Assembly (NCBI GenBank): GCA_965240325.2
Contig: OZ251227.1
Span: 3,224,001 to 3,288,000, forward strand
Direction of reading: 5' to 3'
DNA from: Rebecca billardiae RCC1528
Lineage: Eukaryota; Protista; Haptophyta
DNA: 64,000 nt
The notes below the pieces were generated by a model that did not search any database, was not told the DNA's origin, and worked only from the letters and a program-made list of their open reading frames with translations. Positions 49,966 to 64,000 of the stretch are shown one piece after another. The translations under genes and the position numbers were made by a program. Position 1 is the first letter of the stretch. Every line of letters begins with the position of its first letter.

Positions 49966-50964
49966 TCACGCACGGTCGAGCCCGAGCCAAAAGCGCGCCT
50001 CCGACGACACCGCAGCGGCCGCGCTCGGCACTGCGGCGCCGACGCAGAAGATCGACTTCTCCAGCGCCGCATAGAGGTCGTCGTCGTCGTCAGCATCGTC
50101 GCTCTCCATCGGCGGGGGGGCACCGTGCGACTGGGCCGTGCGCGCCGTCGCGAGCTCACCGAAGAAGAGGGGCGGGCCGTCGCAGAGCAGCAGGGCCGCG
50201 TCCACTGACGCGTCCGCGGCCTCCGCGCAGGGGCCAGTGTGCGCGAGAGGACCGGCGTCGGGCACCTCGACGATGGAGGAGGTGGTGGCCGAAGGAGCGC
50301 TCGTGGTGGAGGCCGACGAGGCGGCCGCCCGCTTCGGCGGCATCGCGTGCGACGTGCGGCGGCAGTGGCGCACGAGCGTCTCGCGCGAGCCGAGCTTGGC
50401 GCCGCACGTCTCGCACGGGTACACGACGCCGCACGACTTGAGGTGCGTGGTGAGGTCCTCGCGCATGGCGTACGCCTTGTCGTCGCAGCGCGTGCAGCGG
50501 TGGCGCTTGATGCCCGTGTAGTGTTTGCGCATGTAGTGCTTCTTCGTCTGGTACTTGCTCGGGCACTTTTTCGCGCAGACGGGGCAGTCCACCGGCTCGT
50601 CCCAGCGCGCGTCAGATATGCCCTCGAACTGCTCAAACTCGACCGGCGCGAGCTGGCCGACGGCGTGGTGGGGCACGGGCTCGAGGAGGGGCACGTCGAT
50701 CGGCGCCGGCGCCCGGAAGCGCGCGGACGGCGGCGAGGGCACGGGCGTCGGGGGCTGGGTGGAGAAGGTACCCATCCGCGGGGCCGCCGCGGCGGGCGCA
50801 AAGAAGAGCGCCGCCTGTGGCGGTGCCGAGGAAGGCGCGCCCACGATGAGGCCGCCGCGCGGGACGTGGCCGAGGGCGAGGGTGGCGTGGTAGTATGCTG
50901 CGGCCTGGAGCGCTGCGTGCGCACGCCGGGCCTCCTGCTCGAGGATGTGGAGCGTGAGGCTCAT
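49966..50964 (-). CDS. C2H2/C2HC zinc-finger protein, ATMIN/STOP1-like finger array
   Basis: CPVC..HYMRKH, CTRC..DLTTHLKSCG, CETCG..LVRHCRRTSH; acidic C-terminus. Confidence 0.85.
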   Translation of the reverse strand: MSLTLHILEQEARRAHAALQAAAYYHATLALGHVPRGGLIVGAPSSAPPQAALFFAPAAAAPRMGTFSTQPPTPVPSPPSARFRAPAPIDVPLLEPVPHHAVGQLAPVEFEQFEGISDARWDEPVDCPVCAKKCPSKYQTKKHYMRKHYTGIKRHRCTRCDDKAYAMREDLTTHLKSCGVVYPCETCGAKLGSRETLVRHCRRTSHAMPPKRAAASSASTTSAPSATTSSIVEVPDAGPLAHTGPCAEAADASVDAALLLCDGPPLFFGELATARTAQSHGAPPPMESDDADDDDDLYAALEKSIFCVGAAVPSAAAAVSSEARFWLGLDRA

Positions 50965-51561
50965 CGTGACGGGTCGGAGTCGTCGTCGCTCTGAGTCTGC
51001 GGAAGAAGCCGAGCCGGGAGCGGGTACGATGAACGCGTTGTGTGCAGCTATTTGCTTGTGTGTGCGGGCGTGAATCGTCGGAATCATCGCACCTTTCAAC
51101 TTGTTTATGCATACCCCGTTTGTAAATATTCCACTTCCGCCGCGGTACAGTTTACCTGTGTCGTTGAATCATAGAATGGATTTACCCTTATCAATGTGGC
51201 CAACGTGGGTCGGCGGCGGTGAAAATGTGAGAAAAGTGAAAAACCCTGCACACTTTTCCACTACAGCAAGCAAAGAAGATACCCAATAACCTGGAAGATA
51301 CCATTACATACAGCGATTATTGGTGCTATCAAAGACCCACAATTCGTACAAGGCCCAAAATCATCAAACTTCTTGAGATACAATCTCCGCAGATCCTGAC
51401 CGAGGAGCGGTGATCTCAGTATGGGGGTAGTCGTGATCGATATCGTCGTAGTGTCGTCCAGTGGCGGCTGGCGGGCTGGCTCTCAGCTTTAAGATCAGAC
51501 TACCGAGCGCTTGACGCCCAGCCATGCAGCTCCGATGGACGGCACGTCAGTCGGCGGTCAG

Positions 51562-54500
51562 TCAGTCGTCAGCGTCGATGCGCTCGTCGTGCGAGACGTG
51601 CGAGTACATGTGCGCACCGAGCAGCTCGACGGGCGCGAGCTCGCTGTGCTCGGGCAGCGCCGCCGGCTGCTTGCCCGCACTGCCGCGGTGCTGATGCGGC
51701 GGCGGCGCGCTCAGGCTCAGCTCCGGGGCGGAGCCGTTCAGCCGCGCGCGCGGCGCGCCGTCCGGCGCGTCCGGCACGGCCGCCGAGGGCAGGCTGCCGG
51801 CGCGCACGGGCGCGGGGCTGCCGTCGTCGCGAGGCGGCGTCGCGCTCGCGGTGGTGGTGGCCGAGCGCGACGAGCAGACGCACGAGGCGGAGCCGCGGGG
51901 CGAGCGCGCGCCAACCGCCGCCTCCGCCGCGGCGGGGCGCTCCACACTCCGCCGCCTCGGCGGCGGGCTCGGCGCCGGCCCGGGCGAGCCGCGCCGCCCG
52001 CCCAGGGGCGGTGAGCCGGAGTTGTGCCGCGTGGGCGTGCCGGAGCCGTGGCGCGAGACCGCGCTGAGCGCCGTGCTGCCCGTGCCCACGCGGCTGAGCA
52101 CCGAGACCGCGGAGGAGCGGCGCGAGGCGGGCTCGGAGCCCGACTCGGTGACGGCCGCGGACGCGCGTCGCGACGAGGCGCCGGAGGGCCGCGGGGAGCG
52201 GCGCATCGAGGTGATGCGGCCGAGCGCGGGCGCGACGAGCGCGCCGAGCTGCTCCTCGTCGAGCCCCGCCGCCGCGAGCTGCCGGCTCGCGCGCTCGGCA
52301 CGCTCCGCCCGCTCCGCCGCGCGCGCCGCCGCCGCCACCTGCATCTCACGCACGTCCGTGAGAACCGACCGCAGCCGCGCGCTGAAGCCCTCGAGTGAGC
52401 CAAACCCGGCCTCGATCACGCCGAGCAGCCGCTCCTCGTCGCACGCGATGCTTGCGTGCGCCTGCCGCACGTCGAAGGCGGCGATGTCCACCTTCGCCGG
52501 CGGGCGCGGGCTGCCGCCCTGCGCGCCGCCGCGCTCGGCGCCGCCGCTGCGCTGCAGTCCGCTCACCAGCCCAGCTGTGAGCCCTGAGCGCGCGCGGCGT
52601 GGCGAGACGGGCGGCGTGCCTTGATGCGCCGCGGGGTGGGCGGAGGCGGCGGCGCCGGCGGGCGCGCCGGGCCCGACGCTGCCGTGGCTGCTGCCCAGGC
52701 TGAGGCTGCTCGCGCTCGGCTGTAGAACGCGGATCCCAATCCCGGCGCACGGCCGCACGACCAAACGACCGATCGCGCCGGCGGCACGGCTCTCGGTGCG
52801 CGCGGCCGGCCGCGCGAGCCTGCCGCCCGGGCTGAGGTCGGCGCGGCTGCTACCGCCGGCGGCGGCGGCGTCTCGCTTGCGCGCGGACGAGCCGCCGCCG
52901 CCGCGCCCGCCGCTGCCGCTGCTGCCAAAGCTCGCCCCGCCAGCACCGGACTCTGCGCCGCCGTGCGCGCCGCCGGCGCCGTGCGCGCCGCCGCCGGCCG
53001 CCGCCTTCCCCGCGGCCGAGCCGCCGCCGCCGCTGCTCAGGTGTCCGCCGTGCGGCAGCGGCGCCGGCGTCGGCTGGTGCCGACTCGGCGGCTCGTCGTC
53101 GGGCACCGACACCTCCGCCGGAACAATCGCCGCCGGGATGTGCGCCGCCATAGCCGCAGGCCCGGTCGCCGAAGCCGCCGGCGCGCTCGCCGCCGCCGCC
53201 GAGCGCAACGTCTCCGCGGCGTGCGCGTGCGCCGCCGCCGCGGCAGCCTCCGTCGGCGCCGCCGCGTACTCGGGCGGCGTGGCGCTCCCGCCCGCACCGC
53301 CCGCGCTCCCGCCACCGCCGCTCGCGCTCGCGCGCGCGCTCGACGTCGCCGAGCCGCCGCCGGACGCGCCGCCGCCGCCGCCCGGCGGCGGCAGCAACGC
53401 CGCCGCGGCCGCGTCGTGGCCCTCCTGACCCAGCAGGTGGAGGTCAATATGGCGGACGTCGCCGCCCATCTCGATGAAGGCGAAGAGCTCGATCACGCAC
53501 CTGCGCGCAGGCGGCGCACGCGCGCGCGCGTCGGTGCGCGTCGACGCGCGCGAGCACGCTGGCTGGCGCAAGCGGCGCGCCGGGCGCGGCCGCGGCCGCG
53601 GCGGCGGACGCGCCGGGCGCGGCGGCGGCCGAGGCGGCGGCTTCGCACCAGAGGCGAGTGAGATAGGTCGGGCCAGCGAGCGCGACGAGCCGGTGGCACG
53701 CGCCCAGGAAGTAGGGGAGGCACGTCAGGTTGATGTCGAGGTCAGCCTGGTCAATACAATACTTGTCTGCGCGAATTGTTTTTGATTCATCATCGCGAAG
53801 AATTCGAGTCGGGCGGCGCGCCGGGCGCCGCGGGCGGGCGCGGAGGGCGGTGCGGGCATGGCACGCGCGCGCGGGGGAAGGCGGCGAGCGTCAGCGCACG
53901 CTCGCGCGCCGTCGGTCGGCATCGTCGCCACCACGCCCTCGTGGGGCGCGGCTGGCGGTCGGGCGCCATGCGTGTGGGTGTGCCGCCCGGTGCGTTGTGC
54001 GCTGCCCCCACCGCGCCGCGTGCCCCCGCCGCGCCGCGCCGCGGCGCGCGGGCGGCGCGCGGGCGGCGCCGGCCGCGTCGTCGCGTCGCGTCGCGGAGCG
54101 GGCGGGCGGTGCGGTGCGGTGGTGTGCGGCGTGGTGGTGGTGTGGTGCGGTGCCGTGTGGTGTGCGGGCGGGCACGCCGCTGTGGTGGTGTGCCGCGTGG
54201 GCCGCGCACCGATCCAAAGCAACGCCGACCGACCGTGCACTCGGCGAAACGCGGCCGCCCAGCGCGTCAAGGCTTCGTACTTTTGGTCGGGGTCGTCGTG
54301 CCAGGAGTGGCTGCGCCGCGCGCGCGCGCACCCGCACACACCGCGCGCGCGAAGGGTGCGCACGATGAGAAGAAGCGTGCGTGAGTCCAGGGGCACGAAC
54401 CAACCAAGCAGGCAGGCGCGCGGCGCGCGCGCGCGGCCATAACCCTAACCCTAACCCTAGCGCGCGGCCAAAAGGGGCGGCGCGGGTCGAGTGTGCCGCC

Positions 54501-55777
54501 GTGCGGGCGCGCACCTGACAAACGCCTGCTCGGCGCGCCGGCGCGCGTGTCGCAGAGCGCGGCACGTGGGCAATGGTGGCGGGCGGGCGGCGCGGCGCGG
54601 TCAGCGGAGAGCGTGCGCGCGAAAGCGAAAACGCGCGCGCGCGCTCGCAGCCACTCAGAGCTTTCCCCCGCTGGCGGCGCGAGGAGCGCGGGGGCGCGGC
54701 GCGCACGTCCACGTCGCCGATGGCCGCGGGCTGCGTGAGCGCGAAGAGCGAGCGGTCCGGCTTGTTGTCGCGCAGGTGCGCCAGCGCGACGAACTCGGCG
54801 GAGACGCAGCGAAAGCGCGGGACCGCCAGTGCCTCGATTTGCGCGACGCCGCGGCCGCCGATCAACTCAGCAACGCCAGCGGCGGCGGAGAGTCGCTCGC
54901 CGCGCCTGGCGAGCCAGGCCATCACGGCGCGGCGGTGCGCGGGCTGCAGCGTGCGCACACCCAGCGCGAGGAGCACGCCGAAGAGCGCCGCGCGCACCGC
55001 GTCCGCCGCCGTCGGCACGCCGCCGCACAGGGCCGCAATCGGCGGCACCACATTCAGCGCCCCAAACCCGACCATAACCCAACCGACGGAGCGCCAGAGG
55101 GCGGCGAGCGGCGCGGCGTGGACGCGCGCGGCGCGCGCGAGGAAGAGCGCCGCGGAGAAGTTGCACGCCACCTTGAGGCCCTCGCACGCCGCCTCCACCG
55201 CCATCAGCCAGCACGGCACCGCCAGACTGTGGTGGTGGGCAAGGACGGTGAGCGTCGCGTGCGCGCGCGCGCCCGCGCGCGCACACGCGAGCGAGGCGGC
55301 GGTGTACGGCAGCAGGAAGGAGATGAAGCCGAAGAGGCCGAAGCCCAGGTTCACCGGGATCAGCGCGATCATCACGCCGCGCGCCAGCTGCACGTTCGAC
55401 GGCAGCAGCGAGTGCAGGACAGCCAGCACGCCGACCGGCGCAAGCAGCGAGCAGCCGAGCAGCGCGGCGAGCCGGTCGAGTCCGGAGAGTCCGGTGAGCG
55501 GCGAGAGGGTGACGGCGAGGGCGATGGCCGAGGCGAAGAGCGAGACCACGCCGAACGCGCGCATCGGCCACTGCACCGCCAGCGAGAAGGTGCGCCCGCT
55601 CGCCCTCGCCATGTCGAGCCGCGAGCGCAGCGCCGCCGCGTCGGACGGCGTGCGCGGCCGGCGGGTGGGCGAGCTGAAGGAGGAGCGGCTGCCTTCTCTC
55701 GTGCTGCCCTTCGTCTCGGGCGCCACCCGCGCGCGGCTGGGCCGCGCGGAGTGCGCGCCGTGCGGCCCCGCCTCCAT
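51562..55777 (-). CDS. Multi-pass membrane protein with cytoplasmic TIR-like domain (exons 55777-54707, 54525-54515, 54310-54210, 53766-53649, 53500-51562)
   Basis: About 6-7 hydrophobic helices, then spliced DVDAFVSHSWHDD...LWIDKYCIDQ...LPYFLGACHRLVALAGPTYLTRLWCVIELF; all four introns are GT-AG and phase-consistent. Confidence 0.85.
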
Positions 55778-62749: not shown

Positions 62750-64000
62750 TCAGAGGCCCGCGCCCGGCGGCGCAGCGGGCGGCCCCTTCGGACCGCCAGC
62801 ACCATGCTTCTTGTGCGCCGGCGGCGGCGCGGCCGCGTCCGCGGCTGCTCGGCTCAGCGCGTCTTCGAGTGAGAAGAAAAGCGAGTCGCGCGCCTCAAGC
62901 CGCTGGCGCTCGGCGGCGGACGCGGCGGCGGCGGAGCGCGCGCGCAGCGCCGCGCGGCTCCGCTTGAGCTCGTCGCGCAGCTCGTCGCGCAGGGCTTGGA
63001 ACATCTCCGCGCACTCGCGCGCCTTGCCGATCTCGGCCGGCCACGGGCCCGCGCCCGCGCGCAGCACGTCTTGCCAGTCCCGCAGGTCCTCCGCGTCGCG
63101 GAGCAGCGACTCGAGCCCGGACTCTCGCCCGGACTCTCGCCCGGACTCGAGCCCGGCCGAGCACGCGGAGGCGAGGCGCTGCCGCTCGTGCGCCAGGCCT
63201 TTGAGTAGCAGCTGGCCCATCGTCACGCTCGAGTCGGCGACGCCGCGCGGCGCGGTCAGCTCGAACTGGCGGTCCTGCTCGGCGCGGCGGCAGCGCGCGC
63301 GCGTGCGGCGGCGCGGGGCGCGCGCGCCGTCGGCGCCGGTCGGCGTGCTGCGCGCTGGCTGGTGCGCGCGAGGTGTGCTCGCGCGGCGCGGCGCGAGCGC
63401 GGGGCACGCCGCGTGGCGCGCAGCAGGGCGCGCGCGCTCGCGCGGCCAGCCTGCAGACCCGGACCGACGGCCCGGACTCGGCGCGGCGGTGGGCTCGGTC
63501 CGGTCCGGCTGCGGAGTCGGCTCGGCCGGCGCGGGCCTCGCCTAACCCTAACCCTAACCCTAACCCTAAGATGCGCGCGCGCGCCGCGCGCGCGCACCAG
63601 CGCGTCGTGCGCCACCGCGCTGGGGAAGGCGGTGGCGCAGAGCAGCTCGCCGTAGAGCTGCAGCTTGGGCGCGAGGCTGTGCACTAGGTGGAAAGTACCC
63701 ACATTCAAGATCGCCATCTCGCCGGGGAGCAGCTCGACGAGCCGGGCGGACGGAAGCTTCCAGAAGGTTCGCCAGTCGAAGGCGGCGGGCGCCCGCGCCT
63801 CCGCCTCCGCGCCGTCGTCGAGCCCAAACTTCGCGCCGTCGGGCTGCGACCAGACCGCGCTCAGCTCATACCCGCCATACATGCGCTTCCACGTGACCGT
63901 GCCGTAGTTGTCGCGGTGGTACTCCGTCGACGCGCCCGCGTGAGTCAGAAGCAATTTCGGCGCGAAGATCGAGGCCAGCTTGTGCTGCTTCAGCCGGAGC
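62750..64000 (-). CDS. JmjC/cupin-like 2-oxoglutarate oxygenase, 5' part outside window (intron 63275-63597)
   Basis: TEYHRD (HxD) ... LLPGEMAILNVGTFHLVHSL (distal His); the intron restores frame with 62750..63274. Confidence 0.7.

Follow-up and report, generated by a model that had tools for sequence, protein, structure and literature searches.

Can a TIR-like domain be hidden from a plain reading of open reading frames by a single 11-nt exon and, if so, what would the protein that carries it do? The locus that raises this question lies on the minus strand between positions 51562 and 55777 of a 64,000-nt stretch of contig OZ251227.1 from the haptophyte Rebecca billardiae RCC1528 (the whole stretch is called the window throughout). 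A previous reading of the letters alone, here the sequence-only reading, had described a multi-pass membrane protein with a TIR-like domain and had taken it for a non-Toll membrane-to-TIR signalling or immune system in an alga. We found that the gene is intact, with five exons and a protein of about 1079 aa, and our alignments place it in a protist family of HET/TIR-like membrane proteins. We use this compound name because the domain joins a predicted TIR fold and a TIR-type Glu to scores that stay below both Pfam thresholds.

The five exons join in frame through four introns and total 3240 nt, that is, 1079 codons plus the stop, in a region with a G+C content of about 70–79%; all four introns start with GTGCG and end with CAG. 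The splice model of the sequence-only reading, in which a micro-exon and further short exons assemble the domain, held exactly in its coordinates and frame arithmetic. Exon 1 (54707..55777; this and the following features are all on the minus strand) is 1071 nt long and encodes 357 aa, made up of an Arg-rich N-terminus of ~70 aa, a membrane block and a juxtamembrane helical linker that runs to ...AIGDVD. Intron 1 (54526..54706, 181 nt, GTGCGC...GAGCAG), which separates D from A in VD|AF at phase 0, leads to exon 2, the micro-exon (54515..54525, 11 nt, GCGTTTGTCAG), which supplies A-F-V plus bases 1 and 2 of a Ser codon. Intron 2 (54311..54514, 204 nt, phase 2) interrupts that codon, and exon 3 (54210..54310, 101 nt) continues with (S)HSWHDD...LLWI, which would correspond to the TIR-like core from the end of strand A through helix A to strand B. 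Intron 3 (53767..54209, 443 nt, phase 1) falls within the Asp codon of W-I-D, exon 4 (53649..53766, 118 nt) reads (D)KYCIDQ...CLPYF...LAGPTYLTRL(W) and is assigned to helix B and strand C, and intron 4 (53501..53648, 148 nt, phase 2) splits the Trp codon of LW|C. Exon 5 (51562..53500, 1939 nt including the stop codon at 51564-51562) starts with (W)CVIELFAFIEMGGDVRHIDLHLL at 53431..53500, which covers helix C, with an invariant Glu, and then strand D. The exon translations read ...AIGDVD / AFV+S / HSWHDDPDQKYEALTRW...LLWI / (D)KYCIDQ...LAGPTYLTRL over the first junctions and LAGPTYLTRL / (W)CVIELFAFIEMGG over the last.

The 11-nt exon is not a chance pattern. When all AG/GT-flanked internal exons between exons 1 and 3 were enumerated, 14 kept the frame, and among these only 54525-54515 (AFVS) or its variant 54528-54515 (QAFVS) regains the invariant Phe and Ser of the family motif VDAFVSHSW; no single-intron join does so. 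The domain is therefore, as had been claimed, hidden from a plain reading of open reading frames and dependent on the 11-nt exon. The variant arises at a tandem acceptor, GAG|CAG|GCG (NAGNAG), at window positions 54525-54528, whose upstream AG, if used, would add one Gln and keep the frame. The micro-exon contributes the invariant F80 and most of the S82 codon (numbering of the family alignment described below). In another copy of the gene in this genome, paralog L020, an intron occupies the identical phase-0 D|A site (...GTGGAC|GTGCG), and the coding sequence resumes at cag|GCGTTCATCTCGCACTCGTGG, reading AFISHSW. Many paralogs also show the W-I|D-K and L-W|C sites, either as tblastn breakpoints or as read-through introns. 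A further, close paralog, L002 (C7:3803702-3806815, ~1800-2160, minus), reads EVDAFM... and resumes at ...QDDADAKW with no recognizable SHSW exon between; judged from its sequence, it either has another tiny exon or is a decayed copy. The L002 intron holds a (CCAGCCAG)n repeat.

The window gene's exons were translated by coordinates and searched one by one. Exon 4 alone (38 aa) matches 89 loci in the 72-Mb genome, the window copy and 88 others, about 66 of the 89 at E < 1e-3, so the family census proposed in the sequence-only reading now stands at a lower bound of at least 89 paralogous loci. Several paralogs form tandem or inverted pairs or triplets with identical match scores (C12:125112-133377, C11:494023-498072, C14:198977-203983, C12:950996-969518), and these identical scores suggest recent local duplication. 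The genome also has 13 H-NOX loci, and none of them falls on any of the 89. One paralog lacks introns across the whole domain and reads VDAFVSHSW...WLDKACIDQ...RLWCIVE...EEDRQRLLGVFETAFGG. Every window exon aligns in order with such intron-free paralogs: the end of exon 1 with their conserved linker AAGVAELIGG...FRC...DN.PD...IGDVD, and the exon 5 tail FDVRQA...DEERLLGVIEAGFG...FSARLRSVL with the last helices of their domain. A word search with the intact domain of a paralog returned 153 homologs, mostly from marine metagenomes and transcriptomes, with Chrysotila (haptophyte), Symbiodinium (dinoflagellate) and Triparma (ochrophyte) among the named sources, and C-type lectin, EF-hand or PAS domains occur in some of these homologs. 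The same word search with the exon 5 tail gave no match, and hence no annotated model or ortholog of the window gene was recovered. As for viral relatives, none was found in IMG/VR, and BFVD gave weak TIR-fold matches.

A 69-sequence alignment of the family has 14 invariant positions (F80, S82, H83, W85, D87, W114, D116, L132, P133, G147, R153, W155, C156 and E159). The window exons hold all 14, and the codons of three of them, S82, D116 and W155, are split over exon junctions. In the linker, R282, A299, F322 and G354, together with W228, are nearly invariant across paralogs and homologs. With its 14 residues, its linker and its C-terminal helices, the gene has by sequence the features of the protist membrane family marked by SHSW, CIDQ and WCxxE, a family with 89 or more loci in this 72-Mb genome that is widespread in marine phytoplankton.

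Existing annotation already pulls the domain in two directions. Two homologs bear the UniRef name 'TIR domain-containing protein', and the nearest clusters in the ESM Atlas are 'TIR domain-containing protein (Fragment)' at 0.97 and 'Heterokaryon incompatibility domain-containing protein (Fragment)' at 0.95, both mainly haptophyte. Pfam gave no TIR or HET match on any window exon or on intact paralogs. Among the 69 homologs, TIR_2 (PF13676) matched 17 at E<=1, the best with E 1.8e-4 and 22.4 bits (cut-off 28) over positions 2-107 of the 122 in the profile, HET (PF06985) matched 14 at E<=1 (best E 7e-3), and TIR (PF01582) matched 2; the family's matches at the sequence level are limited to TIR_2, TIR, ThsB_TIR and HET. 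The one HET match that was inspected reached 11.7 bits (cut-off 22.5) and covered only the WIDxxCIDQ block, at profile positions 42-62 of 146. That HET-type block is present in the window gene as W-I-D-K-Y-C-I-D-Q over exons 3 and 4, where the family consensus is WLDKACIDQ, and from this block the domain appears as much HET-like as TIR-like. A scan of the genome with TIR_2 found 18 canonical matches at other loci, none of them among the paralogs, and a scan with HET found none but carries no weight, as its controls found nothing either. At two places canonical TIR_2 occurs twice in one long open frame, as a tandem TIR (C5:1949398-1950210, L043/L046, and C13:1545244-1546164), separate from the family studied here. 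A profile search of the PDB with the full-length alignment was swamped by hydrophobic matches; restricted to the domain, it returned the TIR domain of TLR15 alone, aligning vdAfvshswhD with FDAFISYSEHD and RLWCvvEl with SCWCQYEL. An hhalign comparison with the genome's canonical TIR_2 domains paired WLD with vWlD, and E159 with the Glu that is invariant in those domains.

Whole-domain tests were run on a stand-in, a paralog in this genome whose domain is uninterrupted (L021:3363-4118:+, 252 aa). Its AlphaFold2 (AF2) model, with a predicted local distance difference test score (pLDDT) of 87.7 and a predicted template modelling score (pTM) of 0.85, shows a beta-alpha core at residues 77-177 and closing helices up to 247. 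Foldseek returned almost nothing but TIRs from the PDB (RUN1, RPP1, SNC1, ThsB, AbTir, SPARTA, TIR-1 and TLR10; E from 0.013, probability up to 0.97), and when its candidates were re-ranked with VIA-align, all the top places went to TIR chains, among them AbTir (Z 9.6, 90 aligned residues, 2.5 Å), MyD88 (9.5), SPARTA (9.1) and SARM1 (8.5). In an independent wide search with VIA the first nine matches were again TIRs (Z 7.4-8.5; SpbK 8.5, MyD88 8.5, SARM1 8.2), followed by nucleoside 2-deoxyribosyltransferases (Z 6.2-7.1), and the structural alignments with TIRs extend to the end of the C-terminal helices of the L021 model. These models argue with moderate strength for a TIR-like fold, of the flavodoxin-type alpha/beta kind, in the intact paralog. 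The proposal that the domain would prove TIR-like by profile and by structure was thus borne out for the predicted fold of the paralog and failed at the Pfam cut-offs of TIR_2, TIR and HET.

The candidate catalytic residue was also retained. Both W155 and E159 of the WCxxE motif are invariant in the 69 sequences, and the window gene has LW|CVIE. The TLR15 TIR and the genome's TIR_2 domains each have a Glu opposite the invariant one, in alignments that are statistically weak. The spacing of four residues from W to E equals that of W638/E642 in SARM1 and W96/E100 in RUN1. The statement of the sequence-only reading that a catalytic-type glutamate is kept agrees with these results, as the Glu is invariant and lines up with the catalytic Glu of TIRs.

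Upstream of the domain, the membrane block occupies aa 71-274 of exon 1 (nt 55567-54956). It has five strongly hydrophobic segments (aa 71-98, 100-127, 131-158, 231-254 and 254-274) and one or two weaker ones between them, and the AF2 model of exon 1 (pLDDT 80.7) shows six long helices followed by three short linker helices. The number of membrane helices, which we put at about five to seven from the predictions, is less certain than the rest of the model. Pfam found no ectodomain family in exon 1, structure searches gave no credible structural relative of the membrane block, and no paralog of the block was detectable in the genome by sequence. Apart from this block the gene has no recognizable sensor module. 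Of the earlier description, ~6-7 transmembrane helices without leucine-rich repeat (LRR) or immunoglobulin (Ig) ectodomain, the missing ectodomain stands and the count is less sure, with five strong segments and one or two weaker ones.

Downstream of strand D the domain is interrupted, in a variable loop, by an Ala/Gly/Ser/Pro-rich insert of 312 aa (52495..53430), and it resumes in the C-terminal helices KVDIAAFDV...DEERLLGVIEAGFG...FSARLRSVL (52351..52494), which are conserved in the paralog alignment. The G+C content at third codon positions (GC3) is 0.88-0.94 through the insert in the frame of exon 5, 0.94 in exon 1, and 0.71-0.92 without stable periodicity in the introns; this coding-like GC3 indicates that the insert is probably translated. 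The ~300-aa insert said to split the domain from its tail is thus real and coding-like, and the tail, by paralog alignment, belongs to the same domain. The equivalent loop in the L021 model is short and of low confidence, and the window insert is far longer than the loops of the paralogs. The rest of exon 5 (51562..52350) holds a short coiled-coil-like stretch and, after it, a probably disordered tail rich in Ser, Arg, Pro and Ala. The coiled-coil-like stretch (window 52200-52350), rich in Ala, Glu and Arg, could help oligomerization; its borderline match to the Pfam H-NS N-terminal family (24.6 against a cut-off of 24.5 bits) is probably compositional.

What, then, might such a protein do? 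We give roughly even chances to a reading in which a bundle of about six helices, a conserved linker and a cytosolic HET/TIR-like domain form a protein that acts on NAD+ (nicotinamide adenine dinucleotide) with a defence or death output. The membrane block would anchor the domain or sense a membrane-level cue, bringing domains together, and an even number of helices would put both termini in the cytosol. The WCxxE pocket of the clustered domains may then act on NAD+, by hydrolysis or by production of a nucleotide signal, as in enzymatic TIRs, and the response that follows would be one of defence, self/non-self recognition or cell death. Counted in favour of this reading were features expected of a repertoire: the 89 loci, the tandem and inverted pairs, and the relatives with C-type lectin, EF-hand and PAS domains. 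Several points weigh against it. The family does not reach the Pfam curated score for TIR_2, TIR or HET, and both the TLR15 match (E 0.64) and the alignment with the genome's own TIR_2 domains (E 0.25) are non-significant. The fold was predicted for paralog L021, not for the window's spliced protein, and its Z values of 8-9.6 are only modestly above the level reached by unrelated models, so the weight comes from the consistency of the match list rather than from single scores. Structure searches identified no ligand-binding feature in the membrane block, and the 312-aa insert could impair the window copy. We consider unlikely a bolder version in which the membrane bundle, which has no ectodomain, does the sensing itself, responding for instance to lipids, ions or membrane damage, and directly gates a HET/TIR-type NAD+-consuming enzyme. 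In that case the at least 89 copies would make up a class of multi-pass receptors not described before, serving innate immunity or self/non-self recognition in algae, and would connect the biochemistry of fungal HET with that of TIRs.

Other functions were weighed as well. A non-catalytic scaffold, signalling by homotypic assembly with other HET/TIR-like proteins, is doubtful but deserves serious weight, as the TIRs of MyD88, MAL and the IL-1R family are among the best structural matches, a large paralog family supplies many possible partners, and an adaptor model was proposed for HET by Dyrka et al. (PMC4986451), much as TLR and MyD88 TIRs are classically described. However, W, C and E of WCxxE are invariant in 69 divergent homologs, a constraint that fits a catalytic pocket better than an interface. 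Less probable than any of these, in our view, is an enzyme of the fold group of TIRs, nucleoside 2-deoxyribosyltransferases and SLOG domains with a non-NAD+ substrate, for instance a nucleotide or a nucleic acid; cleavage of nucleic acids is reported for some TIRs (PMC10197012), deoxyribosyltransferases come directly after TIRs in the wide search, and BFVD gave similar viral matches. Yet TIR chains outrank every deoxyribosyltransferase in that search, none of the latter appears in the two lists derived from Foldseek against the PDB, and the sequence-level matches point only to TIR and HET models. We regard as very improbable a decaying or mis-modelled copy, in which the micro-exon is not spliced in or the insert breaks the domain and no functional TIR-like domain is made. 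Such decay would fit the empty word search with the exon 5 tail, which retrieved no annotated or transcript-derived protein, the length of the insert relative to paralog loops, and the seeming lack of an SHSW exon in L002. It sits poorly with a gene in which the 14 invariant residues are intact, stops and frameshifts are absent, GC3 is coding-like through the insert, and the splice sites share one consensus, three of them at positions used by paralogs; moreover, the chance of an AG/GT-flanked 11-mer spelling AFV plus AG is very small.

The gene can also be compared with known systems. Close in architecture are the multi-transmembrane TIR genes of Gephyrocapsa huxleyi, reported in 2025 to respond early to virus (PMC12489294), a report that we counted in favour of the NAD+ reading. 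They too come from a haptophyte-type alga, place an intracellular TIR-type domain with a conserved Glu after a membrane region, lack nucleotide-binding sites and LRRs, and have a proposed receptor-like immune role. The likeness to the window gene concerns architecture. Matches to the Pfam TIR families in HHsuite defined the G. huxleyi genes, which may or may not carry the SHSW, WxDKxCIDQ and RLWCxxE motifs; they also have expression data from virus infection, whereas the window gene is known here from its sequence. HET homologs outside fungi were described in stramenopiles and haptophytes by Dyrka et al. (2014), who also linked HET to TIR by HHpred (PMC4986451), and a 2023 review restates these points and lists HET enzymology as unknown (PMC10197012). 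The family shares with HET the WIDxxCIDQ block, an arrangement in three blocks that correspond to strands and helices of TIRs, and a large, fast-diverging gene family. In contrast, HET proteins are mostly soluble or linked to nucleotide-binding leucine-rich repeat (NLR) proteins, while the window domain follows a multi-pass membrane block; cell-death activity has been shown for HET in fungi only, and the HET model is weakly matched here.

Enzymatic TIRs (RUN1/RPP1/RPS4, SARM1, AbTir, ThsB and SPARTA) give the best structural matches, at Z 7-9.6, and share the F-x-S-x-x-x-x-D start on strand A and W-x-x-x-E at helix C with the invariant Glu. They differ in an identity of 7-19%, and the family has an extra N-terminal helical sub-domain of ~65 aa and its own C-terminal helices. 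Toll-like and IL-1 receptors are likewise membrane proteins with a cytosolic TIR-type domain, and the Box-1-like DAFVSHS aligns with their FDAFISYS, but the window protein has no LRR/Ig ectodomain, about six helices instead of one, and no Pfam TIR match. The non-Toll architecture put forward earlier is thus sustained, with five to seven helices and short loops in place of the LRR/Ig and single-helix layout.

The novelty of the gene, in turn, was overestimated: homologs are already named TIR or HET, and the papers of 2014 and 2025 report HET homologs and multi-transmembrane TIR genes, respectively, in haptophytes, so that this gene alone adds little beyond automatic annotation and those two papers. 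What the case adds is good support for an 11-nt exon with invariant residues, a family member whose loop insert is unusually long, and the family count. An 11-nt exon with invariant domain residues makes a clean case for annotation. Gene finders that skip such an exon lose the domain, and for this reason counts of TIR/HET-like domains in GC-rich algae are probably too low. If NAD+ cleavage were shown for the WCxxE pocket, TIR immunity, fungal HET and the membrane proteins of algae would be joined in one enzymatic theme, and such a NADase activity would make the family a source of concrete candidates for studies of virus resistance in algae.

The algal nature of the host, also stated in the sequence-only reading, is supported by at least 59 matches to chlorophyll-binding proteins of the light-harvesting complex (LHC) in the genome. 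These chlorophyll-binding genes form arrays in which the copies are nearly identical and often lie head to head (e.g., C12:667121-669893 and C7:3299001-3307727). Within the window, the downstream neighbour of the gene (49966-51099, minus strand) is an open reading frame with C2H2 zinc-finger-like motifs, CPVC...HYMRKH and HRCTRC...HLKSC. Finally, intron 2 of the gene contains about three telomere-type TTAGGG units on the gene strand (window 54443-54462), and an interstitial (CCCTAA)4 run lies near the window end (63546-63569).

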